A stretch of DNA of 64,000 bases, taken from Lepidodermella squamata (taxonomy: Eukaryota; Animalia; Gastrotricha). Positions 1,329-48,534 of this stretch are shown one piece after another (the stretch's first letter is position 1; the number at the start of each line of letters is the position of its first letter). The position numbers and the translations under genes are program-made. The stretch is from the NCBI GenBank assembly GCA_047495785.1, contig JBLDXI010000036.1, positions 930,001 through 994,000 on the forward strand. The letters are read 5' to 3'. The notes beneath the pieces are model-generated. The model saw nothing but the letters and a program-made list of their open reading frames with translations. It had not been told where the DNA came from and did not search any database.

Positions 1329-4300
1329 TCACAGCAATTCAGGAATCGCAAAAGCAGCACAATAGATTTCTAGAACTCGCTGGTTTTCGAAGGAAACATA
1401 AGCAGTTGAGAAAACATTGAGGCAAGCGATGCTTCCCATCAACGGCTCGACCGGAGTAGCCCAGGATCTATGAACAAAAAACGCATTCTCGTCAATAAAC
1501 ACTTCTGATTATTAGTAAATGGTACAAACCCTGCCAAGTTGAATGAAGCGGATGTGGTGAACGGAGAGGCAGGCGGAAAATCCGCGGGTCCAGTTCTTAA
1601 ATTACAAGTAATGTACACTGTTCCTGCATCGGCGTCGTAACCTATCTTAAGATGGTGCCATGCGTTTTCAGCGGTTCCGTCACATTTAACTGATATATCA
1701 GCCGACCCATCGCCATACGGCCTCAGCGTAAACGTTTGACCGACGTCGGCTGTAAGTCTGAAACCAGGCATCGATCCATCAGGAGCAAATTCGAGGATTG
1801 TGCCTTTCTGCGAAGCCGAAGCAGCGAACAAAAACATCGTGGAATTAGCGTTCAGCTTGAACTTCTCAGCAGTCGCAGTTATGGGATTGGTTGAGTTGTA
1901 GTAAAAGGCCGTGTTAGGCCTGCCGAACGGCCCAGACACTTGTTTAAGAGCGGTATTTGTGAAATCAGCTCTAGGATCGATGCGGTCGTTCAGATCAGAA
2001 ACTAAAGGCCAACTGGCAATTAACCCAGGCAGTCGAGAGTTTAACACGTCCATGGTCAAAATCTTTCCGAGCTGGATTTGAAGACACTTTTTGCGTAGAA
2101 TCCATAATTGGTCCTCGGACATCAAGTGCTTGTGAAGCGAAAAACAAGCCAGCCTGCCTTTGAACGTGTCGGTTACGGCAAGTCCTCCGCCGAGTTTCAT
2201 TTTTGAGCTGACTTGCGGTCTAAATCCGAGTAATGGTGCCGGGTCGACACGATTGTCTTGTAACATCAGTAAATTATCCGTATCAAAGTTGTAAGATATA
2301 GCGATGAAAGACCAATTCGGATCCACATTTGGCACAACCGTCATTTCTTGAGCGGTAAGCGGACCTATAAAGACAATCTCCGATGATTTTGACAGTGTAC
2401 GGAATATGGAGAACTTCATATCAGAAACGTTTTTTTTCACGCAGTCAGGAAGAAAGGGGAGAGGGGAGTTGCTGTAAAAGTTCATATTCGAAGGGCGATA
2501 TTTCCCTCTCAGTTGTCTTTCGGCCACTGCTAAATACGCTACATCAGCATCAAAAAATTGGTACGTGAGGGACGTGAATAAAAACATGAATATAGTTTCG
2601 GCACTTGCGAATAGTATGAAGTCTTCAATTCAATGGGGCTTAATCAAGGCTGGATTAAAATTCGGGTGGCCCCTGGGCACTTCCTGGTTAGTATATTTTC
2701 CCGCAAAACCGGTTGTCTAAAAGCCATGAGTCATTTTTCTGAAATTTAGGGCGCCTGAAGCAACGAAAATTCCATTTATTATTAAATTGTGTATTGACAT
2801 TTCTTTAATTTCTCCTCAATTACAAAGCTCAACGACCGAGCCCAGAAAAAATATAGAATTGTCGTCAAAAATATAGGTCGAGTCGCTATGACAATTCGAT
2901 ATTTTACGGTATAACATTCGTAAATCGTTCATATCTGAACTCGCCGCACTCGATTCACTCATCGCAACTCGCCTCCGGCTCGTTCCGACTCGTAAATCTC
3001 GGGCGGCTCCGTACAGATATAAACGTTTTACTCATGTCATACCATACAAATATAACACTGTGTCTATATTTTTAACCTTGAAACACAAATCTATATTTTT
3101 TCATACTTCAAATATAGATTTGAGTATGAACTATATTTCTGATCTATATCTGAAATATAGATTCAGGTGTGTCTATATTTTTGACCTGGAAAATCTATAT
3201 TTTGAATATAGATGCCCATTTCCAAGCCCAATACTTTCGAGTTCTTGGAACAGCCAATTCTAACGGAAAAACACAGGGATATAGTTTTCGCAACGCAATT
3301 TATTATGAAAGAAAATGGAGAAATTCAATTTCGAGAATAATTTAGACGGGGAAAGCTTGGCAGGCGGGCAGCAAAAATTGGCCGTAGGAACTAGAATTTC
3401 TCAGAAAACTCCGGAAAATCGGGCAGCATTTCGTCCCCGCTGTGCATGAATTCGCAGCGATTCGTGGGTCGGATCGCGCAGAAGATCCTCGAACAGGTAC
3501 GGTCAGCAAGTCGCCTCCAAAAGCACCGGGAGCGCTGCGCAGAAGATCCAGAAAAATCCGACAGCATTTAGTCTTTAGTCCCCAACTCGCAGAAATCACC
3601 ACCTGGGATTGCATCTTGCAGCACTTGGTCAGCGACAGTTCCGATTCGATTGCAGTGCAAAAATCGATGTCCCAAACACCGTTGCAACGCGCTTGTCCGA
3701 AACTGAGCCATTTTCAACGACCGGAGATGAAATCCAGACGGACTGTCATCGATTCTCGTGCATCGCATCCAGACGCGTGTCGTTCAAATCGAACCAGTTT
3801 CTTCAGGTTGTAAAGGCGCAAGGTTTTCGCGAACGAATTTCGAGGGAAGCAGGCTTCAGGGTTGATGGGTAATCGAGCTATTCGGCGTCGAATGCGGCAG
3901 GATTGCCAATCGGAGCAGAATTCCGGGAGCATTTGTTCGCAAAATTCGAGCATAGGGTGGTGCGGAAATTCGACGTTCAAAACGAGACAAAATTCGAACG
4001 AATGAGAAAAAATGAGCGAAAATGAATGGCAAGCCAGTTTTAGATGAAATTTTAAGATGTATTTTTTATATTTATTATTTCTGCGTTGCGAAAAATATAG
4101 ACACTCGTATAGATCGAGTAAAACTCATTCACCTCGTGAAATCTCGTCTCCACTCGCCTGCCGGCTCGTTCTGCCTCGATTTCACTCGTTTCATTCGTTT
4201 TACTCGATCTATATTTCGTGCTTCACTCAAATATAGATTCCTACTCATGTTATATATAGCTTGATCCCAACAAAATTGCTGAATATCCTGCGAAATTCCT

Positions 4301-7300
4301 CACTCAGATTATTCCCTAAATGTCGACTGTACTAGTAAATACTAGTGATAAATCTTTGGGGATTGGGGATCAGCATTACTAGAGATTAACAATAAAGCAT
4401 CAGCCAATGCTAATACCTGTCCAGCTTCGAAATATTTCGTTTTCTCTGTCAATTGCAGCGCCAGTCAAATCTGCTGTATCGTCGTAGTACTCAAAAATTC
4501 TTTGCAAGCCGGTGGAACCTAACGGGAAGAAAACGTATGCAGCAAGCGTGAAAGACGAATTTTTGACATCGAGCAAGCTGTTTTCCAAGAGCACGGATCC
4601 AGCTGTTGAATCAATAGAAAGCGCTGAGCTGCTGTAGGGACCGCTGTCGTAGTTCAAGGATGCACCAGTGTAATTTCCGTTGATGCCGTTACCACTGATG
4701 TCACTCGTACCGAATTCCTGGCTGAGAGGCAGATAAAGTGTTTCGAATGGGAGCCCGAACGGAGTCTCTGGGAAGAAATTGTTTCTTAAATGCGTCGAAA
4801 ATTAATAAATGGTGGCTTACGCGTATCACAGAGCTCAGCACTTTTAAACATCAATGTTGAAGTCTGAACATGGAAATAGCTGTGATGAAGTGATGAAACA
4901 TCAGCATAAAATTGCAGGTCTCACCCAGTTTTGAGGGCAGTCGTTTGCTACAGGAACGCATTTCGCCGCCATAAGTAGGGGATAGGTGCAAAGCTTGTGC
5001 TAAAAAAAAAGAAAAAATTGTGATAAAATATCTTGCCTAACAGAATCATGATCGGAAATGGAAAGAAATGTTCAAACTTTAAGTCTTGACAAATAAAAAC
5101 TGGCCCAGAAGTAAGGTTTGGTCAGCGAGTTTGAGCCGAACTGAAGAAAGTAGACAAGTGCGAGCGAAGCGAGCAATTTTTTTGAAAATTTTTTGGTCCA
5201 AAAGCTCTGTCCAAAGGCTGAAAAATTGATAGTTAAAGCCGGTTTCACAAATCATAAGGGTCCCCCCCTGTGGAATTTTCCAACTAGATTCAGAAAATAT
5301 GGGGGCCCTTGGGGCATAAGGGTCCCCCCTTTGGATTTTTCTCGAAGGGCCCGAAAATTGCCTTGTTTGCCTAATGGAAAATCCGGCACTGAAACTGGGC
5401 GAAATTCAGCTCTTATGAGGTGGTTGATTTGTTGCGTAACAAAATTTTGTATAAGATCATCGCATCGGCTCGAGCAGTCCTTAATGCTGAATCGCCTCTT
5501 ACTAGAAAATGTTGACGACTTGCGCAACACGGCTAAATTCCGATCGGAAATCAGAGGTTGGGAGAATTTATTTGGAGAATCAGTTGGCAGTTGGCAGTTG
5601 GCAGTTGGGAGATCAAGATCAGGAACTAAAAAACAACAAACCAGAAATTTCGTTAGATCATGACTACTGCCGAAATTTAAAATTATTAATAAATTAGTAA
5701 AAATTAGCCATGCAAAGTATTTTTCCTCTATTATTGGGACGATTCATAATTGTTGCCAAAATAATCAACGAATTAGGTATGTAACAAAACTCCAGGAAAT
5801 AACGAGGATAAAAGACTACAAGACTAAAAAAAGTTTTTGTATCGTTTACATCGTCAAAAATACCGTAAATTCATCAGTAGCGTCCGTCTTGCAAGTGTCG
5901 TGATTTTCTTTGAACGACGTCGAGTTACCATAGATTTTAACCTGACGCAATGAAATACATTGTTGCAGATTCAAAACCTTATCGAGACGATGGCCCAAGT
6001 ACCCGTGTACCAGTCGTAAAAGCTCCATAGCACTGCTTGCCGTTGCTTGTTTCACACTTGGCGGCTCTCTGTGAAGGATTAATAAATCATTACATGAAGT
6101 CCCAAGTTGAACATGGTATTTTAATTGATTTGTGGACGAAAGTTTCAAAATTGTTACGAGAATAGCATGAAAATGACATAGATTTACCCCTTTCAGGCAG
6201 TTTTCCCTGTTGCTGAACGTAGCAGATGACAATTCCCGAGTTTCAGCACCAGCCTGGCAGCCAGTTGTCTCGAGGCGGCAATCAATGAAGCTCCCGTTGG
6301 ACGAGCTGAAGCACCTCACATGCGGTTTCTGGGTGTCTGGAACTTGAACTGTTAAAATTCAATATACAAGTTCAACATTCGATAATTAAAATCAAAATTG
6401 AAGAAAAACTCACGTGAAGTTCCCGATATGCATTGACCAAGATTGCCAAATGGACTGCCACTTGATTCGAGCTATCAGTATTTTGGTAACATGATCATCG
6501 AAAATTCACACTTATAATTTCTAACCCAGTTCTCGGGGCAGGCGAAGTTGACTGGTACACAAGTTTTCACCACTCCGTTGTCCGTGCATCGTTTAAAAGC
6601 TTGATTCTAATAATTACAATTTAAAACGCAAAGGTAGCAAATAGCAAATAACGAAACATTTACCGCGAATTTTGACCTCGCGCTGTTACAAGCGGCCAAG
6701 CTGTCTTTAAGTGTAATGTTTCTGTACCAATCTAGCTGGAATTGAATGAAGTTACAAATTTAAATTAAATCGATCGCCGAGCAGTGGATTTACCTCGATT
6801 TCTCTGTCTGCAGCTTCCTCTTCACTCAATTGACACTTGCCCAGGCCGGGATTGCAACGTGGTGTTAGGGCGCCGTATTTGTAGCACATTTTAGCATTCT
6901 CATATTGATACAAAATTGCAGCAAAAATGAGCGGCAATTTAAATATTTCATACCCCCAATCGGCAGGTTTGTAGATCTGGGAACAAGGGTCCCCACTAAG
7001 GAAAATAAATGGGAATTTATCAATGGAATTGGAGCGATTGGATAGGATCTTCAAGCAGAAAATAAAATTGAAGATTGAAGATTGAATTTTAAATTTTAAA
7101 TCCTTCAATTCATTTTATTTTTTGTTGTGATTTAAGATAAAAACGTTCCTAAATCCTGAAAGCCATGAGATCGAAGTAAATGTTTTCATTAAATTCGGGT
7201 AAATACTGAAGATTCTATAATTTTTGAACACAATCGGCGTCCAATTTATTGAAGTTCCCTGTTTGACCTCAAATAGGACAACTTTAATAAAATTTGGCTG

Positions 7301-7623
7301 AAAACGACAAAATCTGGCAAAAATAAAACCATCTTGAATCCTGAGAGCCTTGAAATTATTCATAATTTATATCAAAACATAAATTACACCAAGAGGAATT
7401 TTGAGGTAAAATTTCGATGTAGAGTAATTTATTCGATTTATTAAATAAAATTATCTAAAAATACCTGATACTCGGTGATAGGATCACATGTTGGGTTGTT
7501 ATCACGGCATGAAGTGAATGCGTTGTTGGTCACTTGGAAGCATCGCTTGAAAACCTGGCCTGACCCCAAGACGATCAACGTGAACAAAATCACGCAGATG
7601 ATTTCGGTATTAAAGCTTCGCAT
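1329..7623 (-). CDS. Array copy 1: secreted Cys-rich module x6 + tandem LamG/pentraxin-like protein (14 exons)
   Basis: ATG 7623 MRSFNTEIICVILFTLIVLGSG signal peptide. Exons are homologous to the other copies, with GT-AG introns (KRCFQVTNNAFTSC, MCYKYGALTPRC, RCFSSSNGSFIDC, DISGNGING, ACFSLHKH, WPLVSDLND, GPFGRPNTAFY). Last exon SWATPVEPLMGS...AIPELL-TGA at 1329. Intron 12 is expanded to ~2 kb. Confidence 0.85.
2905..4260. mobile_element. Composite insertion in intron 12 of copy 1: two hairpin elements plus tctatattt/aaatataga repeats around a GC-richer core
   Basis: Palindromic hairpins at ~2909-3042 and ~4107-4213 share the loop actcgcct(g)ccggctcgttc. gtgtctatattttt (3059) is inverted with aaaaatatagacac (4091). 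The region is absent from the copy 2 intron. Confidence 0.5.
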
Positions 7624-10254: not shown

Positions 10255-10970
10255 AGAAAACCACGTCTGTTCTGGAAGGAGTTCAAATTCTTTTCGAACA
10301 CTAGCACGGCTTCAAATATCACACATCACCAATCACACTCGGCGATGAAGCCGGCATCAGCGACAAGAAAAAAAGCAAACATCTTTGCAAAGCACCTAGC
10401 TGTGCGGATGATCTCGCCAAAGCCCACTGGCATTTTCAACGCTAACCTGAAAATCAGCGATGTACTTAAGATGTGGAAGGTCACAGAAGCTAGGACCCTA
10501 AAGAAGGGAAAGATTTGAAATCACCAGGGCTGGTTACCGTCGTCTGGAACTGCCTGCCGAAGGATTCAGAGAGGCTCGTCGCTCATCGTGTCCTAAAAAA
10601 TGATCACCAAGAAGATTATTTCGAGAGAGAAGAGCGCGTATGATGGTGGAGTTCCGCAAGTCTCGCCACTCAGCCCCATCTTGTACACGCTGTACACAGC
10701 CGACCTCGTTCGGGATCTTCGACCTCTCGCTGCTGCGAAAAAGCACAAGAGCGAGAAAAGCGCGATCGATCGGGTGAATGATTCCCTCCAGAAAATTGGA
10801 CATAGGTTCAACGAAAGTTAATGTGTGCCTGGATATCCCGATGCCAACCACGGTAAGGCTCATAGAAGCCACTACGAGGCCCTTCGGCCTTCGGGCTTTT
10901 AACTGGGTAAAAAAAAACTTACCAGAATTATACTTGAGACACTGTAAGGCATTTCGAAGGTTCGAAGGTT
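10255..10970 (+). mobile_element. Degenerate non-LTR retrotransposon (LINE) reverse transcriptase fragment
   Basis: GVPQVSPLSPILYTLYTADL corresponds to RT motif GVPQGSxLSPxLF/Y; a PKEGKD motif lies upstream; frameshifted and deleted; paralogous to 19100-19860. Confidence 0.8.
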
Positions 10971-10989
10971 GATCCTACCGCATAGATTC

Positions 10990-11400
10990 AGCTATGCTTC
11001 CCATTTCCCATCAGCGGCTTGACTGGAGTCGTCCATGACCTGTTGAAACAACAGACGATACAAAAAGATACAAATACAGTCATCATACAAACCCGGCCAA
11101 GTTGCATGATCCAGCTGTTGCGAATGGATCTAGCGGTGTAACAGCCTCGGCTGCGGCTCTTGAATCACATTCGAAGGAGATCGCTCTTCTTTCTTGGACT
11201 ATTGTCATTGTTAGAATGTAAATAACAAATGTTAAGACAATGCCATTGAATTCCGCTCGACTCCGCCTCCGGCACATCGAACTGTTGAATCAGCATGGAA
11301 ATTGACATTACCAGGCAAATCGCCACCGAGTTTTACTTTCGAGCCAACCAGTGGTCTGGAAGTGAGCGATTCCTCGTGGATGAAGTTACCGTGAACGAGA
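10990..11400 (-). pseudogene. Internally deleted relic of an array gene (exons 13-14)
   Basis: NFIHEESLTSRPLVGSKVKLGGDLPGNVNF is joined directly to ADSTVRCA, then SFECDSRAAAEAVTPLDPFATAGSCNLAGFV and a degenerate last exon; frameshifted. Confidence 0.8.
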
Positions 11401-11864
11401 TGAGACGAGATGAGAGATGGCGCTGCGACGTTTCTTGCAGAGCCAACTAGTAACATATTGTTCGCAGACGAAGTCGTCAGGCTCTGGTCCATTACATTTG
11501 ATGAGTATGGCTGGGTATAGAAAAGTGGAAGTCATCAATTTCAAATAAATCATGAAATCGACATCTTCAACTGTCTTGGATTTGGGACTTGAAGCTTGAA
11601 CGCTCGTCAATCACAGCAGATTCATTGCGGAAATGCCCCTTTCACACTCAGCAGAGCAAAACGGCAACGTCTTCATAGCTTCGTAAACAAGAAAGCCAGT
11701 TCCCGAGATTGGCACGATATCAAAGAGTCGTTTCATTATGTCGCCCTAATTTGATTGTTGAATATCTGCTTGTTAAATATTCATATACTTATTTTCATAT
11801 TTTTCATGTTGTGTTGACTATTGCATTGTTTTCGATGCTCATCTCGATCAGTCTACTTTTTACG

Positions 11865-12847: not shown

Positions 12848-15800
12848 AATTGATGATGATAGCCGATCTCACAGCAATTCAGGAATCGCAAAAGCAGCAC
12901 AATAGATTTCTAGAACTCGCTGGTTTTCGAAGGAAACAGAAGCAGTTGAGAAAATATTGAGGCAAGCAATGCTTCCCATCAACGGCTCGACCGGAGTAGC
13001 CCAGGATCTATGAACAAAAACCCATTTTCAGAAATAAACACATTTGATTATTAGTGAAAGATGCAAACCCTGCCAAGTTTAATGAACCGGATGTCGTAAA
13101 CGGAGAGGCGGTAGGAAAATCCGCGGGTCCAGTTCTCACATTACAAGTAAGGTACACTGTTCCGGCGTCGGCGTCGTAACCTATCTTAAGATGATGCCAT
13201 GCGGTTCCACCCGCTTTGGAACAGTCAACTGATATATCAGCCGACCCATCGCCATACGGCCTCAGCGTAAACATTCGATCGACGTCGGCTGTAAGTCTGA
13301 AACCAGGCATCGACCCATCGGGGGCAAATTCCAAGATTGTGCCTTTCTGCTCTGCCGATGTAGCGAACAAAAACATCGTGGAATTAGCAGTCAACGTCAT
13401 CTTCCCGGCGGTAACAGAAATAGGTTCGGTTGAGTTGTAGTAAAAGGCTGTGTTGGGTCGACCGAAAGGTCCAGTCACTTGTTGAAGAGCGGTATTCGAG
13501 GTTGTAAAATCAGCTCTCGGATCGATGCGGTCATTCAGATCGGAAACCAGCGGCCAACTGGCAATTAACCCAGGCAGTCGCGATTTGAGCACGTCCATAG
13601 TCAAAATCTTCCCGAGCTGAATTTGAAGGCACTTTTTGCGAAGTATCCAAAATTGTTCGAGGTTCAACGCGTGTCTGTGAAGCGAAAAGCAAGCCAGTCT
13701 GCCATTGAATGTGCCGGTTCCGTCAAAATTGCCACCAAGTTTTATTTTTGTGCTGACTTCCGGTCTTAAGTCACCAAGGGGTACCTCGAAGATGCTATTA
13801 TCATGCGCGACAATGTAATTTTGCGTATCAGCGTTGTAAGATATAGCGATGAAAGACCAATATGGATCCACATTAGGCACGGCCCACAGTTCCGTACCGC
13901 CACCCTGAGCTACAAAGAAAAATTTCAGATAAATCATTTTGATAGGGACTATGGATGCCTTAATATCAGAAGCACGCCAAGCAACAATGAAGACAAATTT
14001 TATATTCTTTCCTGCAGTCAAGAAGAAAGAGGAGAGGGAAGATTCGCAATGAAACCCAGCCTTCAAACCGCTTAAGAGTCTTATTCGAAAAAGGATATTT
14101 CCTTCTCAGTCGCTTTTCGGTCACAGCTGAAACATTACACATGTGCTAAATTTGTATTAGAAAATCGTTAGCGTGTCGTTAATGAATGCATGGATAATTT
14201 CGGCACTGCTATCGGCAAATAGCATGAAGTTACTACGTAAATAGTTACTGTTTTAGGGGGCTGGGATTCAACAAACCTACCTATTATTACATACAAACGG
14301 GGTAATCCTCTGTCAATGATAACGCCGGTTTGATCTGCTGTGTCGTAGAACCCAAAAATTCTTTGCATGTCTGTTGAACCTAACGGAAAGAAAACGTAAG
14401 CAGCAAGCGTGAAAGACGAATTTTTGACATCGAGCAAGGGGTTTTCCAAGAGCACGGATCCAGCTGTTGAATTAATAGAAAGCGCTGAGCTGCTGTAGGG
14501 ACCGCTGTCGAAGTTCAAGGATGGACCAGTATAATTTCCGTCGATGTCGTTTCCACTGATGTCACGTGTACCGAATTCCTGGCTGAGAGGCAAGTAAAGT
14601 GTTTCGAATGGCAGCCCGAACGGAGTCTCTGCAAAGAAATTGTTTCTTAACACGCCGGAAATTAATGGTAGCTTACGCTTGTCACAGAGCTCAGCACTTT
14701 TGAACATAAATGTTGAAGTCTGAACATGGAAATTAGCTGTGATGTAACATTAGCTCCAAATTGCATTGCTCACCCAGTTTTGAGGGCAGTCGTTTGCTAC
14801 AGGAACGCATTTCGCCGCCATATGAAGTGCAAACGTACAAAGCTTGTGCTAGAAATAAAAGCAAAAAATGAAATACCCTTGCCTTACATGGCTTGTGCTG
14901 AAAAGAAAAGTTCAAACTTCAAGTCTTGACAAGAAATATGAATGGGCGAAATTTTGCTCTTATCGGGTCGTTGTTTTGGTGTTTGGTGCGGAATAAAACA
15001 CGTAAATTTACACTTTTCCTTCGATCGTCGCGTCGATTCCAGCAGTGCTTAATACTGACTCGCCCCTAAGAACTGTTGACATCCACCGACGCAACACGGC
15101 TAAATTTCAATCGGAAATCAGAGGTGGGGGAATCTATTAGAATCAGTGGCAGTTGGGAGATGGGGAACCACAAAACCCGAAATTTCGCTCGAGCGTGATT
15201 ACGGCCGTAATTCAAATTGGTAATAAATTAGTAAAAATTAGCCGTGCAAGGTATTTTTTCCTCTATTATTGGGACGCTTCGTAATTTTTGCCAAAAAATC
15301 GAAGATCGACGAAATATCGAACATTAAAGTAAAGTAAGGTTGGCATTATTAAAAAATACCGTAAATTCATCAGTAGCATCCGTCTTGCAGGCGTCGTGAT
15401 TTTCTTTGAACGACGTCGAGTTACCATAGATTTTAACCTGACGCAATGAAATACATCGTTGCGGATTCAAAAAGCTATCGAGACGATGACCCAATTACTC
15501 GTGTTCCAGTCGTAAAAGCGCCGTAGCACTGCTTGCCGTTGCTTGTTTCGCACTTCGCGGCTCTCTGTGAAGGGGAAAAATCATTACATGCAATCCCAAT
15601 TTGTATTTCGTCCCACTATTTGGTATTGCAAATAATTTGTCAACACAAATTTCAAAATTGTTACGAGAATAGCATGAAAATGACATCGAGGAAGCCTTCA
15701 CCCCTTTCAGGCAGTTTTCCCTGTTGCTGAACGTAGCAGATGAAAATTCTCGGGTTTCAGTCCCAGCCTGGCAGCCCGTTGTCTCGAGGCGGCAATCGAT

Positions 15801-17844
15801 AAAGCTTCCGTTGGACGAGCTGAAGCACCTCACATGCGGTTTCTCGCTGTCTTGAACTTGAACTGTTACAATTCAATCAGGCGCGTTTGACATTCGATGA
15901 TCAAAAATGAAAATTATATAAAACTCACGCAAAGTTCCCGAAATGCATTGACCAAGATTGCCAAATGGACTGCCACTTGATTCGAGCTATCAGTATTGTG
16001 GTAACATGAGCATCGAAAATTCACACTTATAATTTCTAACCCAGTTCTCGGGGCAGGTGTAGTTTGCTGGGACACAAGTTTTCACCACTCCGTTGTCCGT
16101 GCACCGTTTGAAAGATTGATTCTTAAAATAACAAGTTAACAAGTAATGTTGAAAAATTTGGAGTGAATTTACCGCGAATTTTGATCTTGCGTTATTACAA
16201 GCCGCCAAGCTGTCTTTCAGCGTAATGTTTTTGAACCAATCAAGCTGGAATTGGAAAAAGTTAAAAAGTGAATGTTTAGGTGTAAATTTACCTCGATTTC
16301 CCTGTCAGCCGCTGGTTCTCCAGTCAATTTACAATTTCCAAGGCCGGGATTGCAACGTGGTGTTAGGGCGCCGTATTTATAACACATTTTGGCATTCTGA
16401 TATCAATAAAAATTACAGCAACAAGAGGCCAGCCATACCAATATTTCATACCCCTAATCGGCAGGTTTGTAGATCTGGGAACAAGGGTCCCCACTGAGGA
16501 AAATAAATGGGAATTTATCAATGGAATTGCGGAAAATATTTTTTTTAACATCAAATTTACTTTTTTCAACATCAAATTTCTTTTTCTATCATCAAACTCT
16601 TTTTTCAACAGCAAAATTCAGAAATTATTATTTGATAGGGAAGAATATGCTTTCATGATGAAGTTGTGGATTTCAAGTGCTTATGACCTCGGGTGATGAT
16701 AGCGGGGCCCAGACTCGTGCCAATAAGGTAAGGTGATCATATCCAGAGGTGGAAACAGGTCGGGTTAATCGGCCGGTAAGCTGACCGGTTGCCGGTTGGG
16801 TCAGTGCCGGGCATAGTTGCTTCTCGACGGCGAGACATGGGTGCTGATGGCATCCGGGGCGAATCAGCGTCACAAGACCACTTTCCAACTAACGACACCA
16901 GTCGAGAAGCGAATCGAGGAATATTACAATCGAATCGACACATCTCCGGGGTGTGAGTTGAAAATCTCCATCAACATTGGCAATGCCCGCCCTCAAGACA
17001 GGGAGCGCATGCGGCTATTCAGTGCAGCGTACCGGCGTAAGACGTTCCGGCAGCTTAACCTTGAAGGGCCCTGACTAATTTCACTCATTTGCATCATTGT
17101 CTTCGCAAAAATCGTAAAATTATTCGGATAAATATTTAAAAATTCAATTTCTTTGGCCAAAAATCAAATATTTGTTCGTAACTTTGCAAAATTGCAGCTA
17201 ACTCAATTTTCTATACTTTTATAAACGGGTTCGACAGCAATAAACTACAATGCTTTGCCGAATTTTCTGTGATTTTTCCGGACTGGTCATCATCAAGGGC
17301 TTTAATGAGTGTTGATCGCAAAAATTAACATATCGAAATTTGCTGTTGAAAAAAGAGTTTAATGGTAGAAAAAGTAATTTGATGTTGAAAAAAGTAAATT
17401 TGATGTTGACCAAAGGTGACCCGAAATTGCGAGCGATTGAAGGAGATTTTTAACCAGAATAAAAATGGAGAACAATATAATTTAAATTGAAAGATTAAAT
17501 ACAAAATCGTTCAATTATTTTATTGATTTTTTTAAATCAAGGAAAGAACTCTTAAATCCTGAGAGCCTTGAAATTATTTAAAATTTCAATCAAAACATAA
17601 ATCACACCAAGAGGAATTCTGAGGTAAAAATGTCGATGTATAGTAATTCATTCGATTCATTGAATAAAATTATCTAAAAATACCTGATACTCGGTGATAG
17701 GATCACATGTTGGGTTGTTATCGCGGCATGAAGTGAATGCGTTGTTAGTCACTTGGAAGCATCGCTTGAAAACCTGGCCTGACCCCAAGACGATCAACGT
17801 GAACAAAATCACACAGATGATTTCAAAATATTAAAGCTTCGCAT
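12848..17844 (-). pseudogene. Array copy 2, apparent frameshift in exon 1, remaining exons look intact
   Basis: Closest paralog of copy 1. Reads ATG CGA AGC TTT AAT ATT TTG AAA TCA TCT GTG TGA: +2 nt versus copy 1, stop at codon 12. Downstream exons (ORFs 15495-15833, 14168-14707, 13008-14066) stay open with normal splice sites. Confidence 0.7.
16532..17422. mobile_element. MULE/Foldback-like non-autonomous element in intron 1 of copy 2
   Basis: ~75 bp inverted arms built of ~20 bp subrepeats (aacatcaaatttactttttc). Flanking near-duplicated 9-mer ggaattgcg / gaaattgcg. Absent from the copy 1 intron (~7030). Confidence 0.75.
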
Positions 17845-18839: not shown

Positions 18840-19010
18840 CGCTCTTCCCTCAGAAATTGTTAAATCAGCCGACACATCGCCATACAGCCTGAGAATATAA
18901 GTTGGACTGGTATTGGCCGTAATTCTTAACCCGGTCTTCGAATCATCGGGAGGGAACTTCAAGATTGTGTGGTCAGAGCGCATAAAGGGTCATCGTAAAA
19001 CTGTTATCTG
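18840..19010 (-). pseudogene. Relic fragment of the second LamG-like domain
   Basis: TILKFPPDDSKTGLRITANTSPTYILRLYGDVSADLTI matches TILEFAPDASTTGFRLTADVNRTFILRPYGDGSADLTV. Confidence 0.75.
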
Positions 19011-34295: not shown

Positions 34296-37200
34296 TCACA
34301 GCAATTCTGGAATCGCAAAAGCAGCACAGTAAATTTCTAGAACACGCTGCTTTTCGTAGGAATCTGCGTAATTGAAAGGCTCTGAGAAAATGTTCAGGCA
34401 AGCCATGCTTCCCATCAACGGCTCAACCGGGGTAGCCCAAGATCTAGGAAACAATTATTCACTTGGAAATTATGATAATTCGAGAAAGAAACAAACCCTG
34501 CCAAGTGGAATGAACTGGACTTGGTGAACGGAACTGGAATTGTTACATCCCAGATGCCAACTCTCGTTGAACACGAGAAGAACGTTCCCTCATCTTCGTC
34601 GTGGATAATCTTGAGATGATGCCATGCTACTCCATTTGACCCGGAACACTTAAGCGATATATCAGCCGACCCATCACCAAACGGCCTCAGCGTAAAGGTC
34701 TGATCGACATCGGCCGTAAGTCTGAACCCAGTATTCGATCCATCGGAAGCGAATTCCAGGAGTGTGCCTTTCTGCGAAGCCGAAGCAGCGAACAAAAACA
34801 TCGTGAACTCAGAAGTTAGCTTGATCTTTCCGGAATTCACAGCGATAGGATCGGTTGAGTTGTAGTAAAAGACTGTGTTAGGCCGGCCAAATGGCCCAGT
34901 CACTTGTTGAAGAGCAGTATTCGGTGTCGTAAAATCAGCTCTTGGATCGATGCGGTCGTTCAGGTCTGAAACCAAAGGCCAACTGGCTTTAAACCCGGGT
35001 AATCGCGATTTCAACAAGTCCATAGTCAAAATCTGCCCGAGCTGAATTTGAAGGCACTTTTTTCGAAGTATCCACATTTGTTCGAGGGACATGGCGTGTC
35101 TGTGAAGCGAAAAACATGCCTGCCTGCCGTCGAAAGTGTTGCTTCCGCCCAAATCGCCTCCGAGTCTTAGTTTCGTGCTAACCTTCGGTCTAGATCCGGT
35201 TAATAGCATCTCTTGGACAAAATTATCATGCACAACCAGCAATTTTTCGGTATCAAAGTTGTAGGATATAGCGATGAAGGACCAATTCGGATCCACATTT
35301 GGCACAACACCTTGCAGTTCACCAACGTTATCCTGAGCTGTAGAGAAGAAATGTCTCTCTTTTAATTACTACGGTGAGACAACGGAAAATAAAATGTAGT
35401 CGATGCCAAACGTACCTGTTTTTACTCGTAAAATATCAGTTTCTCTGTTTATTGCAACGCCAGTAAGATCTCCCGTGTCGTAGAACCCGAAAATGCTTTG
35501 CAAGCCGAAGGATCCCGATGGAAAGAATACGTATTCAGCAATCGTGAAAGATGAATTAACGACATTGAGCAAGCTGTTTTCCAAGAGCACGGATCCAGCA
35601 GTTGAATTAATAGAAAGCGCTGAGCTGCTGTAGGGACCGCTGCTGAATGACCAAGATGCGCCGGAGTAATTGCCATTGATGTCGTTTCCACTGATGTCAC
35701 TCGTGCCGAATTCCTGGCTGAGAGGCAGGTACAGAGTCTCCAATGGTAGGCCAAAAGGAGTCTCTGCGTCAAAAATGCGACTTATTGTCTAAATAAACCG
35801 AGGAATCAAAGCTAACTAACGCTTATCACATAGCTCGGCGCTTGTGAACATCGAAGTTGATGTCTAAACAAGGAATTTTTAGACTGAGGCTGAGACGACG
35901 TATTATTCTTTAATTTTATATGGGCTTACCCAGTTTTGAGGGCATGAATCAGCTAGTGGAACGCATTTTGCCGCCATGTGGAGGGCGAATGTGCAAAGCT
36001 TGTGCTAGTTTACGGAAACAAATTAATAAATGAATAGTTACCAGTTATGACCAGGAATCTCCCTGGTAATGGCTTTTAGCTCTTGGCGTTTCTTCACAAA
36101 TTATTGAAAATTTTTGAAAAATACGACGGCCATAGAAAATAATTGAATGATGCAAGATTCAAGAAGTTTGAATTCGGAAGAAATACCGGAAATTCATTAG
36201 TCGCCTCCATCTTGCAGGCGTTGTAGTTATCTTTGAACGACGTCGAGTTGCCAAAGACTTTAATCTGTTAAGGCAAACTTTTTGGCGAATTCGAAAGCCA
36301 GCTGGAACGCCTAACTTACCCGCGTACGACTCGGAAAAGCTCCATAGCACTGCTTGCCCTTGGCTGTGTCGCATTGTACGGCTCGCTGTTCGGGGTAAAA
36401 ATAATCGGAATTTGAGGCTTACCAAGAAAATCGAAATGTTTTCAATCATTATAGTATTTCTAATGAGAAAAACATGAAACAAGAGGAAGTTGGGACTATG
36501 TTACCCCTTTTAGGCAATTTTCCCTGTTGCTGAACGTTGCCGACGAAAATTCCCGAGTTTCAGTCGCAGCCTGGCAGCCGGTTGTCTCGGGGCGGCAATC
36601 GATGAAGCTCCCGTTAGACGAGCTGAAGCACCTAACATGGGGTTTCTCGCTGTCTGGAACTTGAACTGTTTTGCCAGACAGAAATTTCATGATCATTTGT
36701 CAATGAAATTTATGAAAAATACACACGTGATGTTCCAGAGATGCAGAGGCCAAGGTTACCATAAGGAGTGCCACTTGATGCAAGCTGAAAAAAAAATTGA
36801 AAAATATACGTAAATGGATTAATTGCTCCCCTAACCCAGTTCTCGGGACAGGCGAAGTTGATTGGGACACATGTTTTCACCACTCCGTTTTCCATGCATC
36901 GTTTGAAGGCTTGATTCTAAAAACTTGGAATGCAGAAATTCGAAAATTTAAAAACCCCAAACTTACGGCGAATTTCGATCTCGCGTTATTGCAAGCGGCC
37001 AAGCTGTCCTTTAACGCGCTTTTCCTAAACCAATTGAGCTGATATTAAATGAAGATTGTAATAGAATAGATTAGAACATGGTGCCGACGTTTACCTCGAT
37101 TTCTCTATCAGCAACTGGCTCGCCAGTTAATTTGCAGTTGCCAAGACCGGGATTGCACCGTGTTGTTAGGGCGCCGTATTTGTAGCACATTTTAGCGTTC

Positions 37201-37678
37201 TTTTTTCGGAGATGGATAAAATTAACAGTACCGATAGCAACACTTCCCATTTCTCACCCCCGAACGGCACGCTATCAAATCTGCGAACAAGGGACCCCAC
37301 TAAGGAAAATAAAAAAAATTAGCCATCGGATGAAAAAGTCGAATTATTTATCAGCCTAATTCGAATTAATACTAACAAAATTTGGAAAATAACACCGTGA
37401 GACGAATCTAGAAAATGGCACTCAATTATTCTAAAATCGACTATAATTTAAGATGTGCTACATTTTGAAATTTTTCACCCATTCAAATTTGAGATTTTGC
37501 TGAATAAACATTTAAAAAATACCTGATACTCGGTGATAGGATCACAGGATGGGTTGTTATCACGGCACGAAGTAAAGGCGTTGTTGGTCACCTGAAAGCA
37601 TCGCTTGAAGTTCTGGCATGATGCCAGGCCGAAAGAAGCTAGCGCAATCGCGAAAATTATTGAAATTAAGCTTTTCAT
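34296..37678 (-). CDS. Array copy 6: secreted Cys-rich + tandem LamG-like protein (LamG region of the copy 1/2 type)
   Basis: ATG 37678 MKSLISIIFAIALASFGLASC; full exon chain; shares IQLG.ILTMD..SRLPG with copies 1 and 2; ends AIPELL-TGA at 34296. Confidence 0.85.
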
Positions 37679-38726: not shown

Positions 38727-41700
38727 TCATAGCATCTCAGGAATCGCATAGGAAGCGCACCGAATTTCTGAGATTCGTTGATGAATGGAGGTTAACGTTG
38801 GAAATTTGTTCAAGCAAGCAACGCTTCCCATCAACGGTTCGAAAGGTGTAGCCCACGATCTATTATAACGAGTAATAAATCGTAAATTAATGTTTTAAAT
38901 TATTTAATATTAAGTTATACCCTGCCAAGTGGAATGCTTTTGCTGTAGTTAATGGCTGTGTTAGCGTTACTTCAGATCTGCTACCTGAATCACAAACAAG
39001 TGAGAGCGTTTGCGTTAGAGGGTCGAAAAAAATCCTGAGATAATGCCATTGAATTCCGCTCGATTCGGCACATCGAACTGTTAAATCAGCCGACCCATCG
39101 CCGTAAGGCCTAAGAATGAAGGTTCGATTGACGTTGGCTGTAAGTCTGAACCCCGCCGTTGACGCATCGGGAGCGTATTCTAGGATTGTGCCTTTCTGCT
39201 TGGCCGGAGTAGCGTAAAGTATCATCGTGAAATAGGAAGCCAGCGCGATCTTTTCGGCAGTTACAGCTATAGGATCGGTTGAATTGAAATAAAAAGCTGT
39301 GTTAGACCGGCCGAACGGTCCAGTCACCTGTGGCAGAGGCGTAGATGGGGTCGTGAAATCAGCTCTAGGCTCGCTGTGGTCATTCAGATCAGAAACCAGA
39401 GGCCACGTCACCACCGGCGTTTGCGTGAGACCATTGAATACATCCGGTGTAACAATCATCCCCGCCCGAATTTGAAGGCACTTCTTCCTAAGAATCCACA
39501 ATTTGTCGAGAGTCATCGCGTGTTTGTGAAGCGAAAAACACGACAGCCACCCTTGGAAATTAGTGTAACCGCCCAAATCACCACCGAGCTTTATTTTCGA
39601 ACTAACCAGCGGTCTCGTATTTTGAGTTACTGACTCTTCATAGACAAAGTTATCATGAACGATCAGCAACTTCTGCGTATCGTAGTTGTAGGATATAGCG
39701 ACGAAGGCAGTCGTCGGGTCAACACTCGGCACTGCACCAGCAAGAGGAATAGCGTAGTTCTGATCTATCACAGAGAAATAGATTATTCGTTGGATAAAGC
39801 ATCACTATGTTTGAGTCTCAAGAACAGAAACAGAAAAAAGGCAATTGAAAACTCACTTGTGGTTACTCGAAGGAAGTTCGTTGCTCTGTTAATATCAACG
39901 TTAGTAAGATCTCTTGTGTCGTAGAACTCGAAAATTCGTTGCAAGCCGCTAGAGCCCGACGGAAACTGGACGTATACAGCAATTGTGAACGATGAATTCT
40001 CGACATTGAGCAGATTGCTATCCAGGAGTACGGAACCATTTGCGGAATCAATAGACAGCGCATCGATGTCTAACGGGGAAGTTGCGTATGTCAACGATGA
40101 GCCGGAGTAATTCCCGTTAATTCCATTTCCGCTGATGTCAGTCGTGCCGTAGTCACTGCTGAGGGGTAGATATACAGTTTCAAGTGGCAGCCCGAAAGGA
40201 GTCTCTGATAAAGAAATCCGAATCATCCATTGTACTAAAGTATTAAAGCAGCAGCTTACGCTTATCACACAGCTCAGCACTTGTGAATGTTGTCGATGAT
40301 GAAGTCTGTTGAAAATTAGCTGTGATGAAACATTGGCTTCATATCGTAGAACTCACCCAGTTTGGAGGGCAGTCAGCTGCTACTGGAACGCATTTCGCCG
40401 CCATAATACGAGCTAACGTGCAAAGCTTGTGCTGAAAACCAGAAAACAAGAAATCTTATCGGCTGAAAAGTTGAGCAATTGTTGTTTCATATTCTTACTT
40501 TAGCCACATAAATCTAGCTAGGGTCTTTTTCATAAAAAAATACCGTATTCTCTGTGGTTTCCACCTTGCAAGCGTTGTAATTTTCTTTGAACAACGTCGA
40601 GTTGCCATAGACTTTGATCTAGATAAGCATGACATCGCTTTATAATTAGGAAACCGAGTAATGATGCCTCACTCACCCGAGTACCATTTGGAAAAATTCC
40701 GTAGCACTGCTTGCCGTTGCTTGTGGCACATTGGACAGCTCTCTATTGGAAGAACAAATCAACTAGAAATCCCTATACTAAGAGCTTAATAAATTTCGAT
40801 TTACTATCCAGGAGTATTTTCTGGGATAAAAATAATTATAATTTTGAAAGATAGATAGAGCTTGAGCACTTCAGGGGCCAGATTCTCAGGTAAAAATTGT
40901 TGTTTGAAAATATTAGTTTACCCCTTTCAGGCAGTTATCCCGGTTGCTGAATGTAGCCGATGAAAACTCCCGAGTCTCAACCCCTGCCTGGCAGCCAGTT
41001 GTCTCGAGGCGACAATCGATGAAGCTCCCGTTGGATGAGCTGAAGCACCTAACATGCGGTTTCTCGCTGTCTTGAATTTGAACTGTTACAATTCAAGACG
41101 TATAGGTTTATTCGACATTCGATGGGCAAAATCGAACTCACGTGAAGTTCCCGAGATGCATTCACTGAGATTACGATAAGGACTTCCACCTGATGCGAGC
41201 TACAAAAGCATGAATTCCGAAAATCCATATCAAGAAATTATCTCTCCTATTCATCATACCCAGTTCTCGGGACAGGCGTAGTTCGCTGGGACACAGGTTT
41301 TCACTACTCCGTTGGCACTGCATCTTTTGAAAGCTTGATTCTAAAAATGTCAAGTTAAAAAGCAGAGGTAGCAAATAACATAACATTTACCGCGAATTTC
41401 GATCTCGCGTTATTGCAAGCTGTCAAACTGTCTTTCAGCATATTGTTTTTGAACCAATTAAGCTGGAATTAAAGGAGAGACTAAATTAAATTTTTAATCG
41501 AACAGTGAGCTGTGAATTTACCTCGATTTCTCTGTCAGCTGCTGGTTCGCCAGTCAATTTACAGTTGCCGAGGCCGGGATTGCATCGCGGTGTCAGGGCG
41601 CCGTATTTGTAACACATTTTAGCATTCTGCGCACCAAAGCGATAATTCAACAGTGAAACACGTGGATTTCTCGTAGCTTACCCCCAATCGACACGTTGCT

Positions 41701-43150
41701 AAGTCTGCGAACAATGGACCCCACTAAGGAAAAGAAACAAATTTGAAAATCAGAATTCAATTTAATGACTAAATTCAAATTTATTTCAACCTAATGATCA
41801 TGGAAATCATAAAGATTTTAAAATTTCCCCCGCACTTGGGAATGAATTTCGATGGGATTTTCCAGCAATTTACTTTATTTTTCTTTATTTATTTATTTAT
41901 AATAAAAATAATTATAATTTTGAAAGATAGATAGAGCTTGAGCACTTCAGGGGCCAGATTCTCAGGTAAAAATTGTTGTTTGAAAATATTAGTTTACCCC
42001 TTTCAGGCAGTTATCCCGGTTGCTGAATGTAGCCGATGAAAACTCCCGAGTCTCAACCCCTGCCTGGCAGCCAGTTGTCTCGAGGCGACAATCGATGAAG
42101 CTCCCGTTGGATGAGCTGAAGCACCTAACATGCGGTTTCTCGCTGTCTTGAATTTGAACTGTTACAATTCAAGACGTATAGGTTTATTCGACATTCGATG
42201 GGCAAAATCGAACTCACGTGAAGTTCCCGAGATGCATTCACTGAGATTACGATAAGGACTTCCACCTGATGCGAGCTACAAAAGCATGAATTCCGAAAAT
42301 CCATATCAAGAAATTATCTCTCCTATTCATCATACCCAGTTCTCGGGACAGGCGTAGTTCGCTGGGACACAGGTTTTCACTACTCCGTTGGCACTGCATC
42401 TTTTGAAAGCTTGATTCTAAAAATGTCAAGTTAAAAAGCAGAGGTAGCAAATAACATAACATTTACCGCGAATTTCGATCTCGCGTTATTGCAAGCTGTC
42501 AAACTGTCTTTCAGCATATTGTTTCTGAACCAATTAAGCTGGAATTAAAGGAGAGACTAAATTAAATTTTTAATCGAACAGTGAGCTGTGAATTTACCTC
42601 GATTTCTCTGTCAGCTGCTGGTTCGCCAGTCAATTTACAGTTGCCGAGGCCGGGATTGCATCGCGGTGTCAGGGCGCCGTATTTGTAACACATTTTAGCA
42701 TTCTGCGCACCAAAGCGATAATTCAACAGTGAAACACGTGGATTTCTCGTAGCTTACCCCCAATCGACACGTTGCTAAGTCTGCGAACAATGGACCCCAC
42801 TAAGGAAAAGAAACAAATTTGAAAATCAGAATTCAATTTAATGACTAAATTCAAATTTATTTCAACCTAATGATCATGGAAATCATAAAGATTTTAAAAT
42901 TTCCCCCGCACTTGGGAATGAATTTCGATGGGATTTTCCAGCAATTTACTTTATTTTTCGTGAATTATTAATAAAAAACTTCGATAGAAAATACCTGATA
43001 CTCGGTGATAGGATCGCAGGTGGGGTTGTTATCACGGCACGAAGTAAATGCGTTGTTGGTCACCTGAAAGCATCGCTTGAAGTTCTGGCAAGACGCTTGA
43101 CCAAGCAACGTGGAAGACGTTACAAGAATTAGTGAAATAAAGCTTCTCAT
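38727..43150 (-). CDS. Array copy 7, containing an internal tandem duplication of exons 2-7
   Basis: ATG 43150 MRSFISLILVTSSTLLGQASC; exons 2-7 appear twice (1076 bp period); ends AIPEML-TGA at 38727. Confidence 0.8.
40826..42959. repeat. Near-perfect tandem duplication, 2 x ~1.06 kb (period 1076 bp)
   Basis: 40826-41883 matches 41902-42959; identical ORFs are called at 41171 and 42247. One substitution noticed (gtttttgaac vs gtttctgaac). An AT-rich ttta spacer sits at the junction. Confidence 0.9.
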
Positions 43151-43199
43151 TGCTGGTTTATTCGCATAAAATGAAAAGGATTAATGACAGGGGAGGGTT

Positions 43200-44998: not shown

Positions 44999-47900
44999 TT
45001 AGAACATTCCAGGGATCGCGTAGGAAGCGCAAAGAATTTCCCTAATCCTTTGTTGATCGGGGGTGAGGTTCCCGCTAAAGCTCAGGCAAGCTAAGCCCCC
45101 CACCAACGGCTCGTTAGGGGCAGTCCAAGACCTACGAACAGCAGTAATTCAAAAAAGAACAAATGTGATAATTTCAAGGTACAAACCCCGCCAAGTGGAA
45201 TGATCCAGCAGTAGTGAATCGCTGTACTATTGGAGCTTCGGCTACAATCCTCGAATCACATATGAAGGATAGTTTTAGGTTTTGAGGGTCGATGCTAATC
45301 CTGAGATACTGCCATTCGATTCCGCTCGACTCGGCACAACTAACTGTTAAATCAGCCGATCCATTGCCGTACGGCCTGAGAATGAAGGTTCTATTGACGT
45401 CGGCCGTCAGTCTGAACCCTGTCGTCGACCCATCAGGGGCGAATTCCAGAAGTATGCCCCTCTGCTTGGCTGAACTAGCATACAACGCCAACGTAGTAGC
45501 ACCATTTATCACGTTATTTGCGGCAAACAAAGCAATAGGATCGGTTGAATTGAAATAAACGGCCGTATTTGGGGGGCCGAACGGTCCAGTCACCCGTTGC
45601 AAAGCCGCAATCGAGGTCGTAGATTTAGCCGTAGGCTCCCTGCTCTCTTTCAGATCGGAAACCAAAGGCCATATTGAAGACGCGTTTACTAAGGTGTAGA
45701 CTATCTCCCGAGTCATAATCCACCTTTTCCGGACTTGAAGACACTTCTTACGAAGTATCCACAATTGAGCGACGGTCATAGCGTGTTTGTGGAACGAGAA
45801 GCATGCCATTCCGCCTTCGAAATTGATGCTTCCACCCAAATCGCCACCGAGTTTCAGTTTCGAGCTAACTAGTGGTCTTGAAGTGAGTGGTTCTTCGTGG
45901 ATAAAGTTTTCATGAACGACCAGCAGCTTCTGCGTATCGTAGTTGTAGGAAATCGCAACGAAGGCAGACGCTAGTTCAACGCTAGACACTGCACCATTGA
46001 TGGCTAGGCCGAGGTTCTGATCTATGACAAAAAATTTCAAACTTGTAAATTCCTATTCAAAGATCCAATCAAAGGGGGTGGGAGGGGAAGGGGTTTCATA
46101 TCCTCAGCTCGCAATGCGCGCAAGGTGGGAACCTCCTAGCTCCTAGAAACCAACAGGGGAACCTTTGGTCATCAAATGCGGACCTGAAAATTCCCTCTAG
46201 GTCGAGGATCCTAGGTCATAAACAACGTTTTTCCCGAAAGTTGAATGTTTTTCAACGGGAAATCAGTGGAGGGGAAATCAAGGTTCCATTGTATACTTCA
46301 AAACTTACTTATTATTACTCGAATTGTGTCCGTTGCTCTGTCAATATCGAAGCTAGCAAGATCTTCTTCATTGTAAAACTCGAAAATTCTTTGCAAACCG
46401 CTGGAACCCGGCAGAAATATTGCGTAAACAGCGATCGTAAACGATGAATTGTCGACATTGAGCAAGCTATTGTCCAATAGCATCGAGCCGGTAAATGAGT
46501 CAATATTTACTGCATAGTCGTCGTAAACACCGACCCGGTATGAAAACTGTGATCCGGTGTAATTTCCGTTGATGCCATTGCCACTGATGTCCCTCGCATC
46601 CTCGTTGAAAGGTAGGTATACAGTTTCAATTGGTAGCCCGAAAGCGGTCTCTGAATAAAAAAAGGGGAGTTCCAGAATTAGAGGTAATACCGACTCACGC
46701 TTATTACACAGCTCAGCAGATTCGAACGTTGAATTGGAGATCTGGATGAAAATTAATTCTGATGAAACGGCGTTTTTTCACCATTGGAACTTACCCAGTT
46801 TTGAGGGCATTCGTTAGCTACTGGAACACATTTGGCAGCCATGATCAGATCATATGTGCAAAGCTTGTGCTGGAAAAGAGAAAAAATTGTAACAGTTTGG
46901 GAATTTAAATCTTGCTATTGTTCTTTCAATGAGTGCTCTCATCGAAAATTATGATGACAATCAGTGCGTGTAGGATCCAGGGCGCGAAGTACGGGGGAAT
47001 GAGGGGTATCGTTTCCCCCAGTTCAGCAGGCCAAAGTGAAAAATCCCAAAACCACAGGGGAACCTGTGGTTTTGGGGAAATACCCCCTAGTTCGAGGATC
47101 CTACTTCGACCAAAAGGTCATCCCTGTGGATTTTTTGGGGGTTGGGGAGGTATGGCACCATAATTCCCATACAACCCCTTTCCCTCTCCCCCAACCTCGT
47201 ACTTCGCGCTGTAATGGCAATTACCATTTGTTCCGTGGGCTTCGTCTTGCAAGCGTCGTAATTTTCTTTGAACGACGTCGAATTGCCGTAGACTTTTACC
47301 TAGAATCATTGAATCGGCTTAGATAAGCAGATATAGATGACTTGCTTACCGGAGTACTAATCGGAAAAGCTCCGTAGCACTGCTTGCCATTGCTTGTCTC
47401 ACATTGGACAGCTCTCTGTTCGGAGAAAAAGAATCATCAAGGTCAAAATTGATCTCACCATTTGATGTTACCCCTTTCAAACAGTTTTCCCTGTTGCTGA
47501 AAGTGGCCGAGGAAAATTCTCGAGTTTCAGAGCCAGCCTGGCAGCCAGTTGTCTCGAGGCGGCAATCAATGAAGCTCCCGTTCGATGAGCTGAAGCACCT
47601 AACATGCGGTTTCTCGCTGTCTGGTACTTGTACTGATATCGGTCGAAAGAAATAAATCCCTTCGATGTTAACTTATCATGTTATGAAGAACATACATGTG
47701 GTTCTGGAGATGCAGCGGCCAAGACTATTGTAATTACTTCTACCTTTGAGCTACAGTGACATTTTTTTAAATTATGGCAATAGGTTAATGATTTTTCTAA
47801 CCCAGTTCTCAGGACAGGCGAAGTTGGCCGGGACACAAGTTTTGACCACCCCATTCGCCGTGCATCGTTTGAAGGGTTGATTCTAAAAGATGAAAGTAAT

Positions 47901-48534
47901 CGGATTTTTCAACATTTTACAATTTACCGCGAATTTCGATCTGGCGTTATTGCAAGCGGTCAAGCTGTCTTTCAACGTGTTAGCCCTGTACCAATTAAGC
48001 TGAAGTTGAAAAAGTAGTAAATTGAAATGAGATTGAACATAGAGCTGTTAAGTTACTTCAATTTCTCTATCAGCAGCTGGCCCGCCACTCAATTTGCAGT
48101 TGCCGAGGCCGGGATCGCAGCGTGGTGTCAGGGCGCCGTATTTGTAGCACATTTTAGCATTCTGTTATCGATAGAAAATTGCAGGAATATGGGACCAGCA
48201 ATTCATAATCTCGTACCCCTAAACGGCACGTTTTGACATCTGCGAACAAAGGCCCCGACTATGAAAAATAAAACGAAATTAAACATTAGAAATCAAATTT
48301 TCAACAAGAAAAAAATTGGAAAAAATTTAAAAATTTGTTTACATTTGTTTAAATGTGTTTCGAATCGAATAAAATTCTTCAAAATACCTGGTATTCGGTA
48401 ATAGGATCACAGGTAGCATTGCACGAAATGAATGCATTGCTGGTCACATGGAAGCATCGTTTGAAGGCTTGGCACGATGCCTGGCTGATAAAAGCGAACG
48501 AAATCACGAGAATTAGTGACAAAATGCTTCTCAT
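44999..48534 (-). CDS. Array copy 8: secreted Cys-rich + tandem LamG-like protein
   Basis: ATG 48534 MRSILSLILVISFAFISQASCQAFKRCFHVTSNAFISC; full exon chain; ends AIPGMF-TAA at 44999. Confidence 0.85.
46962..47210. mobile_element. Small TIR element family in introns (relatives at ~21119-21290, ~27626-27850, ~46070-46290)
   Basis: gcgcgaagtacg / cgtacttcgcgc inverted ends; shared core cccctagttcgaggatcctact also at ~21235 and, diverged, at ~46195. Confidence 0.55.

Follow-up and report, generated by a model that had tools for sequence, protein, structure and literature searches.

A tandem array of eight paralogous genes for predicted secreted proteins with a cysteine-rich stalk and paired LamG-like domains in the gastrotrich Lepidodermella squamata

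The genomic stretch of Lepidodermella squamata analysed here (the window: 64,000 nucleotides, positions 930,001 to 994,000 of contig JBLDXI010000036.1, assembly GCA_047495785.1; GC content ~42 %) harbours a tandem array of eight paralogous genes, all of which are located on the minus strand between positions 1329 and 48534. They are predicted to encode secreted proteins composed of a cysteine-rich stalk and two C-terminal LamG/ConA-like domains (the heads), an architecture that is real, apparently undescribed and lineage-restricted. The stalk is strongly constrained by purifying selection while the heads change faster, and the family has been renewed by unequal crossover and conversion. The role favoured for the proteins, with a probability of roughly 45 %, is to recognise or agglutinate foreign surfaces, those of microbes among them. 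A literature search on the Gastrotricha, the sister phylum of flatworms, retrieved nothing on secreted, immune or cuticle proteins, nor was any description of the array's gene family found.

Gene array and predicted protein architecture

Self-comparison of the window placed eight mutually related blocks in the interval from 1.0 to 48.6 kb; a preliminary description had taken them to be eight same-strand paralogs of 14 exons. Splicing models of all eight copies (c4, c6 and c8 read by hand, with the exons of c4 fitted to the other blocks) bear this out: a single 14-exon plan with identical intron phases is common to the eight paralogs, and the introns are of the GT-AG type and mostly 45–66 nt long. 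Six copies (c1, c3, c4, c6, c7 and c8) are intact and code for 743–757 amino acids (aa). The copies, the exons of type copy c4 and a motif upstream of the genes are located as follows.

1329..7623, minus strand: c1, intact, 14 exons, 754 aa; intron 12 of 2 kb; exon 3 acceptor GAG, not YAG
12869..17844, minus strand: c2, exon 1 frameshifted near codon 6 (net +2 nt), exons 2–14 open
20039..24547, minus strand: c3, intact, 753 aa
25959..29351, minus strand: c4, intact, 750 aa; type copy
30381..33689, minus strand: c5, 5'-truncated, starting at exon 2; 40-aa insertion in exon 12 (first LamG domain, LamG1); C-terminus extended
34296..37678, minus strand: c6, intact, 757 aa
38727..43150, minus strand: c7, 753 aa without a duplicated block; 926 aa, in frame, with both blocks spliced
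44999..48534, minus strand: c8, intact, 743 aa
29351-29196, 28989-28948, 28892-28788, 28724-28653, 28599-28519, 28466-28415, minus strand: exons of c4 for signal peptide and stalk
28354-28194, 28071-28006, 27949-27866, 27610-27536, 27482-27440, minus strand: exons of c4 for signal peptide and stalk, continued
27384-27037, 26983-26149, 26091-25959, minus strand: exons of c4 for the two LamG domains
29415..29444, minus strand: conserved bipartite upstream motif, example at c4
7676, 17897, 24616, 37741, 43216, 48602, minus strand: same motif at the other genes with exon 1

The upstream motif occurs once, about 50–100 nt 5' of the ATG, in all seven genes that possess exon 1 and is absent from c5; it represents a candidate shared promoter element, with the proviso that the pattern was built from these same copies, which makes its chance figure circular. 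Two splice sites deviate from the common plan: the exon 3 acceptor of c1 (position 6898) reads GAG, in contrast to YAG or AAG elsewhere in the array, and the usual exon 10 acceptor of c5 (~32173) is lost, with in-frame alternatives close by. Splicing at c1 exon 3 and c5 exon 10 may differ from that of the other copies.

A hydrophobic N-terminal signal sequence of ~21 aa is encoded by the seven copies bearing exon 1, although c2 has it out of frame. An internal membrane helix was found in none of the copies, the maximal internal hydropathy over 19 aa being 1.1–1.7. The stalk of ~290 aa is basic, the heads are acidic, and the proteins contain 8–19 N-glycosylation sequons. Hydropathy and cysteine layout thus agree with the signal peptide, cysteine-rich region and lack of transmembrane segments noted previously. 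Six small cysteine modules, mostly of the pattern C-x8/10-C-x6-C-x15/28-C, make up the stalk; modules 1 and 4 align with each other, as do modules 3 and 6, which yields two A-B-C triplets. Of these six modules, given as 'Cys-module x6' in the preliminary description, five carry four cysteines, whereas module 5 carries three in all eight copies. A mature intact protein contains 23 stalk and six head cysteines, and this odd total of 29 suggests a free or interchain cysteine.

Relatives were searched for exon by exon, with lower sensitivity for the modules and for LamG1, both of which are split across exons; spliced models were used for alignment and selection tests. The stalk exons gave no Pfam match at E<=10 in this exon-wise scan, and the cysteine module matched nothing among PDB sequences, the 5.8-billion set and metagenome contigs, with nothing usable in the ESM Atlas; the module 4 exon yielded no candidate in the 5.8-billion set. 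Structure modelling of module 4 reached a predicted local distance difference test score (pLDDT) of 51, and fold searches with the model were uninformative (best Z 3.4). The module may represent a new small disulfide domain. A Kunitz/BPTI affiliation, considered because module 6 ends with F-x-S-A-E-x-C, found no support at the sequence level, the modules having four cysteines, not six, and lacking a Pfam or PDB sequence match; no Kunitz fold appeared among the matches of the low-confidence module 4 model (pLDDT 51).

The C-terminal part comprises two homologous domains, LamG1 and LamG2, which align over 138 columns. Pfam LamG_3 (PF13385) is matched by both with E ~1e-4 at 20.5–21.6 bits, compared with a gathering cutoff of 27.6 and covering partial domains, and the ESM Atlas gave a feature score of 0.98 to LamG_3 clusters. 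The model of exon 13 obtained with AlphaFold2, in which the LamG2 part has a pLDDT of ~55–79, superposes on the LG domains of agrin, neurexin and laminin (VIA Z 9.5–9.7, root-mean-square deviation ~2.6, ~113 residues), and Foldseek agrees on the LG fold (E ~1e-4). On the basis of this model the second domain is shown to have a LamG/ConA-like jelly-roll fold. LamG1 spans two exons and is recognized from a Pfam match on its C-terminal half together with its alignment to LamG2; exon 12 alone has no Pfam match. The two jelly-roll domains proposed earlier are supported in this way, and of the designation LamG/pentraxin the LamG/ConA-like part is upheld by the structure match, whereas the pentraxin part is not, its signature being absent. 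Matches of the model to clostridial neurotoxin binding domains and chains of the NTNH type reflect the common jelly-roll only and do not identify toxin genes; likewise, the bacterial origin of LamG_3 clusters in the ESM Atlas is not evidence for gene transfer.

At the sequence level, profiles of exons 12 and 13 retrieved nothing from the 5.8-billion set, metagenome contigs contained no match to the LamG domains, and PDB sequences gave nothing significant. The single phmmer match of exon 13 in 1.84 billion representatives, a bivalve receptor tyrosine phosphatase, was rejected as spurious, since its score was summed over FN3 repeats and its hhalign probability was 6.6 %. That the architecture was not recognized in the preliminary description is in line with the lack of any database relative in these exon-wise searches.

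Turnover of the array and selection on its copies

Relics, a frameshifted copy, a truncated copy, an exon-block duplication and mosaic identity had been reported for the locus. All of these were recovered: the frameshifted c2, the truncated c5 and the features that follow, which include three relics.

985..1076, minus strand: relic of exon 13 (LamG2 part)
10940..11500, minus strand: relic of exons 13–14 with internal deletion
18804..18980, minus strand: relic of exon 13 (LamG2 part)
40826..42972, minus strand: tandem duplication of c7 exons 2–7, units 40826-41896 and 41902-42972, each ~1071 nt, 99.5 % identical
26697..27123, minus strand: conversion or unequal-crossover tract of c4/c5, reaching from the end of exon 12 through intron 12 into the start of exon 13, inside LamG1

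In c2, no ATG rescues the reading frame after the net change of +2 nt in exon 1. Its frameshift is either very recent or a sequencing error, because the ratio of nonsynonymous to synonymous substitution rates (dN/dS, omega) of its stalk is still low (0.08). The heads of c5 are under relaxed selection (omega 0.81 vs 0.39, p=0.001), and since exon 1 and the upstream motif are missing as well, c5 is probably a young pseudogene.

The duplication within c7 contributes about one extra A-B-C triplet. The DNA run examined, the only one listed with the stretch, derives from one individual and is probably the multiple displacement amplification (MDA) source from which the assembly was made, hence not independent of it. 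In this run the duplicated unit has a contig depth of 114–118 compared with 50–56 on either side, and the contig that spans the junction reaches 60. Because of this approximately twofold depth and the junction contig at single depth, the duplication is probably real and an assembly artefact was judged unlikely.

Mosaic identity is borne out by the c4/c5 tract, where ~430 nt are ~98 % identical (permutation p<0.0002) and intron 12 is 98 % identical vs 49–75 % in the other introns of the two copies. Shorter shared tracts connect c1, c2 and c6. The nearest copy to c2 is c1 (91 % identity in the stalk, 79 % in the heads), and their shared flanks, which include a reverse-transcriptase-like remnant at ~10.3–11.0 and 19.1–19.9 kb, point to a segmental duplication as the origin of this pair. 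By its motifs the remnant (10257-10966 and 19102-19857) resembles a decayed reverse transcriptase of a retroelement lacking long terminal repeats; it has no Pfam match and shared in the duplication of the flanks upstream of the two genes.

The family extends well beyond the window, because 171 further contigs of the same DNA run match at 90–95 %, concentrated on the stalk exons, and at most 14 contigs carry one variant; contig depth yields no copy number for this wider family. Contigs of approximately single depth, with joints 42704-42988 and 41630-42986, fuse intron-like sequence downstream of exon 1 to sequence resembling the exon 3 acceptor, and some paralogs outside the window may lack exon 2 or have another intron layout.

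The region 37596-40855 (c7 and flank) is covered by long variant-free contigs of depth ~50–56, without a second-allele contig at 90 % likeness, in an organism reported to be ~3 % heterozygous (PMC11660948). This portion of the array may be missing from the other haplotype or strongly divergent there; MDA bias and local homozygosity are alternative causes of the depth pattern.

Across the paralogs, the stalk is 73–91 % and the heads are 47–79 % identical, dN amounts to 0.12 in the stalk vs 0.31 in the heads, and pairwise dN/dS ranges from 0.11 to 0.26 (about 0.2) in the stalk and from 0.17 to 0.63 in the heads. Codon site models were run on the six intact copies. For LamG2, the comparison of M8a with M8 gave a likelihood ratio test (LRT) statistic of 9.0–9.5 (p ~0.001) that was reached in none of 37 null simulations; the positive class has an omega of ~2 at ~19 % of sites, concentrated in the second half of the domain. 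Because this signal weakens away from gaps (see below), positive selection on LamG2 is suggestive only. LamG1 displayed no positive selection in the site models, and the stalk was marginal (M8a–M8 p=0.043; M1a–M2a and M7–M8 non-significant).

Possible functions of the encoded proteins

The encoded proteins are best pictured as secreted, N-glycosylated 'stalk-and-head' binding proteins, in which the two A-B-C triplets would form a conserved rod bearing the tandem pair of LamG/ConA-like jelly-roll domains. The stalk may serve as spacer or oligomerisation scaffold, and chains may be joined into dimers or networks through the cysteine that module 5 leaves unpaired. The heads, chiefly the distal LamG domain, would bind glycans or proteins, each paralog with preferences of its own. 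The most likely setting would be secretion onto an epithelium of this bacterivorous animal, in gut, mucus or body surface, where the proteins would attach multivalently to microbes or other foreign surfaces and so agglutinate or recognise them. Counted in favour of this recognition role are the purifying selection on six intact 14-exon open reading frames (ORFs) with constrained stalk and varied heads, the site-model signal in LamG2 and the LamG fold, as well as the pseudogenes, relics, conversion and further paralogous contigs.

Several observations weigh against it. The nearest structural matches of LamG2 are LG domains of matrix and adhesion proteins (agrin, laminin, perlecan, neurexin), not lectins, and the pentraxin signature is absent. 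The LamG2 omega class is modest (1.4–2.0), its signal drops to p 0.02–0.05 with M2a non-significant when alignment columns up to three positions from a gap are left out, and recombination or misalignment can inflate it. No RNA run was listed with c6, itself weak evidence of anything. Moreover, tandem-expanded families combining cysteine modules and LamG domains are known as structural matrix proteins: the vestimentiferan LamGPs, tandem-expanded to 65 and 140 copies, are located in tubes (PMC8476170), and Pif/LamG3, tandem-expanded secreted proteins with LamG and small cysteine domains, in mollusc shells (PMC10543319).

These precedents and fold matches lend substance to the strongest competing explanation, according to which the array encodes structural or adhesive matrix proteins (of cuticle or scales, egg shell, mucus or adhesive-tube glue) that are cross-linked by stalk disulfides and bind matrix glycans or proteins via the LG pair, copy number providing dosage and fine variation. 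It is also favoured by the odd cysteine conserved in all copies, as expected for a disulfide-linked polymer, by the common upstream motif, which suggests co-expression, and by purifying selection on most sites. Like Pif, LamG3 and LamGP, the array proteins combine small disulfide modules with a C-terminal ConA-like domain of the LamG_3 type behind a signal peptide, and are secreted and tandem-duplicated (PMC10543319, PMC8476170). The known proteins differ in possessing six-cysteine ChtBD2 or VWA domains, whereas the array modules form four-cysteine A-B-C triplets without Pfam match and are followed by two LG domains. The two groups showed no detected similarity in sequence. The exon-wise Pfam scan found no ChtBD2, VWA or EGF domain, the array proteins lack low-complexity or acidic tracts, and varied heads on a conserved stalk, together with the weak LamG2 class of omega>1, are better suited to ligand diversification. 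A matrix role is a serious contender, if a somewhat less probable one than recognition.

The copies could, in a further scenario, be largely redundant duplicates of one secreted protein that expand and decay by unequal crossover, with the divergence of the heads reflecting relaxed constraint on surface loops and not specialisation. Pairwise dN/dS is below 1 throughout (0.11–0.63), the selection signal fades away from gaps, and two broken copies and three relics accompany the others; yet six copies have stayed intact at dS ~0.5–1.5 with low dN/dS, which is long for pure redundancy, and the LamG2 test is nominally significant, so that this scenario appears rather improbable. A locus for allorecognition or gamete recognition, also envisaged in the preliminary description, found no support and is very unlikely. 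L. squamata reproduces mainly via parthenogenesis, the proteins are secreted without membrane anchor or receptor partner, and the bubble-free ~50x contigs over c7, which set against ~3 % heterozygosity (PMC11660948) could point to a structurally different haplotype and would join the variable heads in its favour, can also stem from MDA bias or local homozygosity.

A stalk rich in cysteines followed by a C-terminal LG pair is a layout shared with Gas6/protein S/SHBG, laminin alpha, agrin, perlecan and eyes shut, on whose LG domains LamG2 superposes with Z 8.5–9.7 at 6–19 % identity. In contrast to those proteins, no Gla, EGF (six-cysteine) or LE modules were found in the array stalk, and genes of the Gas6 type are conserved and low-copy, without a birth-and-death array. 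Pentraxins are likewise secreted jelly-roll proteins (SAP Z 9.0, PTX3 Z 8.2), and PTX3 has an N-terminal oligomerising stalk. The array proteins differ from them by their two tandem domains and, by inspection, by a loop after the last glycine-containing strand that is devoid of the acidic residues of CRP and SAP, in which such residues are carried by the calcium-binding loop; the signature HxCxS/TWxS is missing from the six intact copies, and Pfam Pentaxin (PF00354) was not matched.

FREPs, VCBPs and SpTransformer resemble the array in being secreted products of multigene clusters that contain pseudogenes, undergo conversion and vary in their binding regions. In the exons scanned, Pfam matched none of the domains typical of these families (IgSF, fibrinogen, chitin-binding, Trf elements), and divergence within the array is old and mostly purifying, so the likeness is one of analogy only. 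The previous proposal of a diversified recognition family holds with respect to birth-and-death evolution, conversion and faster heads; diversification of the ligand-binding type is indicated only by the modest LamG2 signal. A far-reaching version of the recognition role, in which the four-cysteine triplet domain would be the constant scaffold, oligomerised by disulfides, for variable lectin-fold heads that are shuffled and diversified on it and in which haplotypes would differ in copy number, would make the array a gastrotrich-specific, independently evolved equivalent of FREPs or VCBPs and, for the phylum, a first candidate for an immune repertoire; this version is regarded as doubtful. Stalks with lectin-fold heads in birth-and-death arrays are familiar from several phyla, and the surprise is moderate unless a function or diversity at the haplotype level emerges. 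As a large family based on a cysteine module without database match, the array offers a handle either on microbe recognition by these bacterivores or on the composition of their cuticle, scales or glue.

Neighbouring genes

Directly upstream of the array, a detached duplicate of a CUB exon is located on the minus strand (48967-49245). It derives from an astacin-CUB-kringle metalloprotease gene at ~52075-53960 (minus strand). Between the two lies an intronless ORF of 763 aa on the plus strand (49606-51894) with an ANF_receptor domain, i.e. a ligand-binding domain of the type found in class C G protein-coupled receptors. Two intronless paralogs coding for DXD glycosyltransferases (Gly_transf_sug), inverted relative to each other and 81 % identical at the DNA level (54009-55094, minus strand; 58232-59221, plus strand), flank a prolyl 4-hydroxylase-like gene at ~55.8–57.3 kb. 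Two plus-strand ORFs have no Pfam match, one of them coding for 157 aa, cysteine-rich and apparently secreted (60211-60681), the other for a hydrophobic product of 428 aa (60838-62121). Additionally, an ankyrin-repeat exon was identified on the minus strand (59316-59786).

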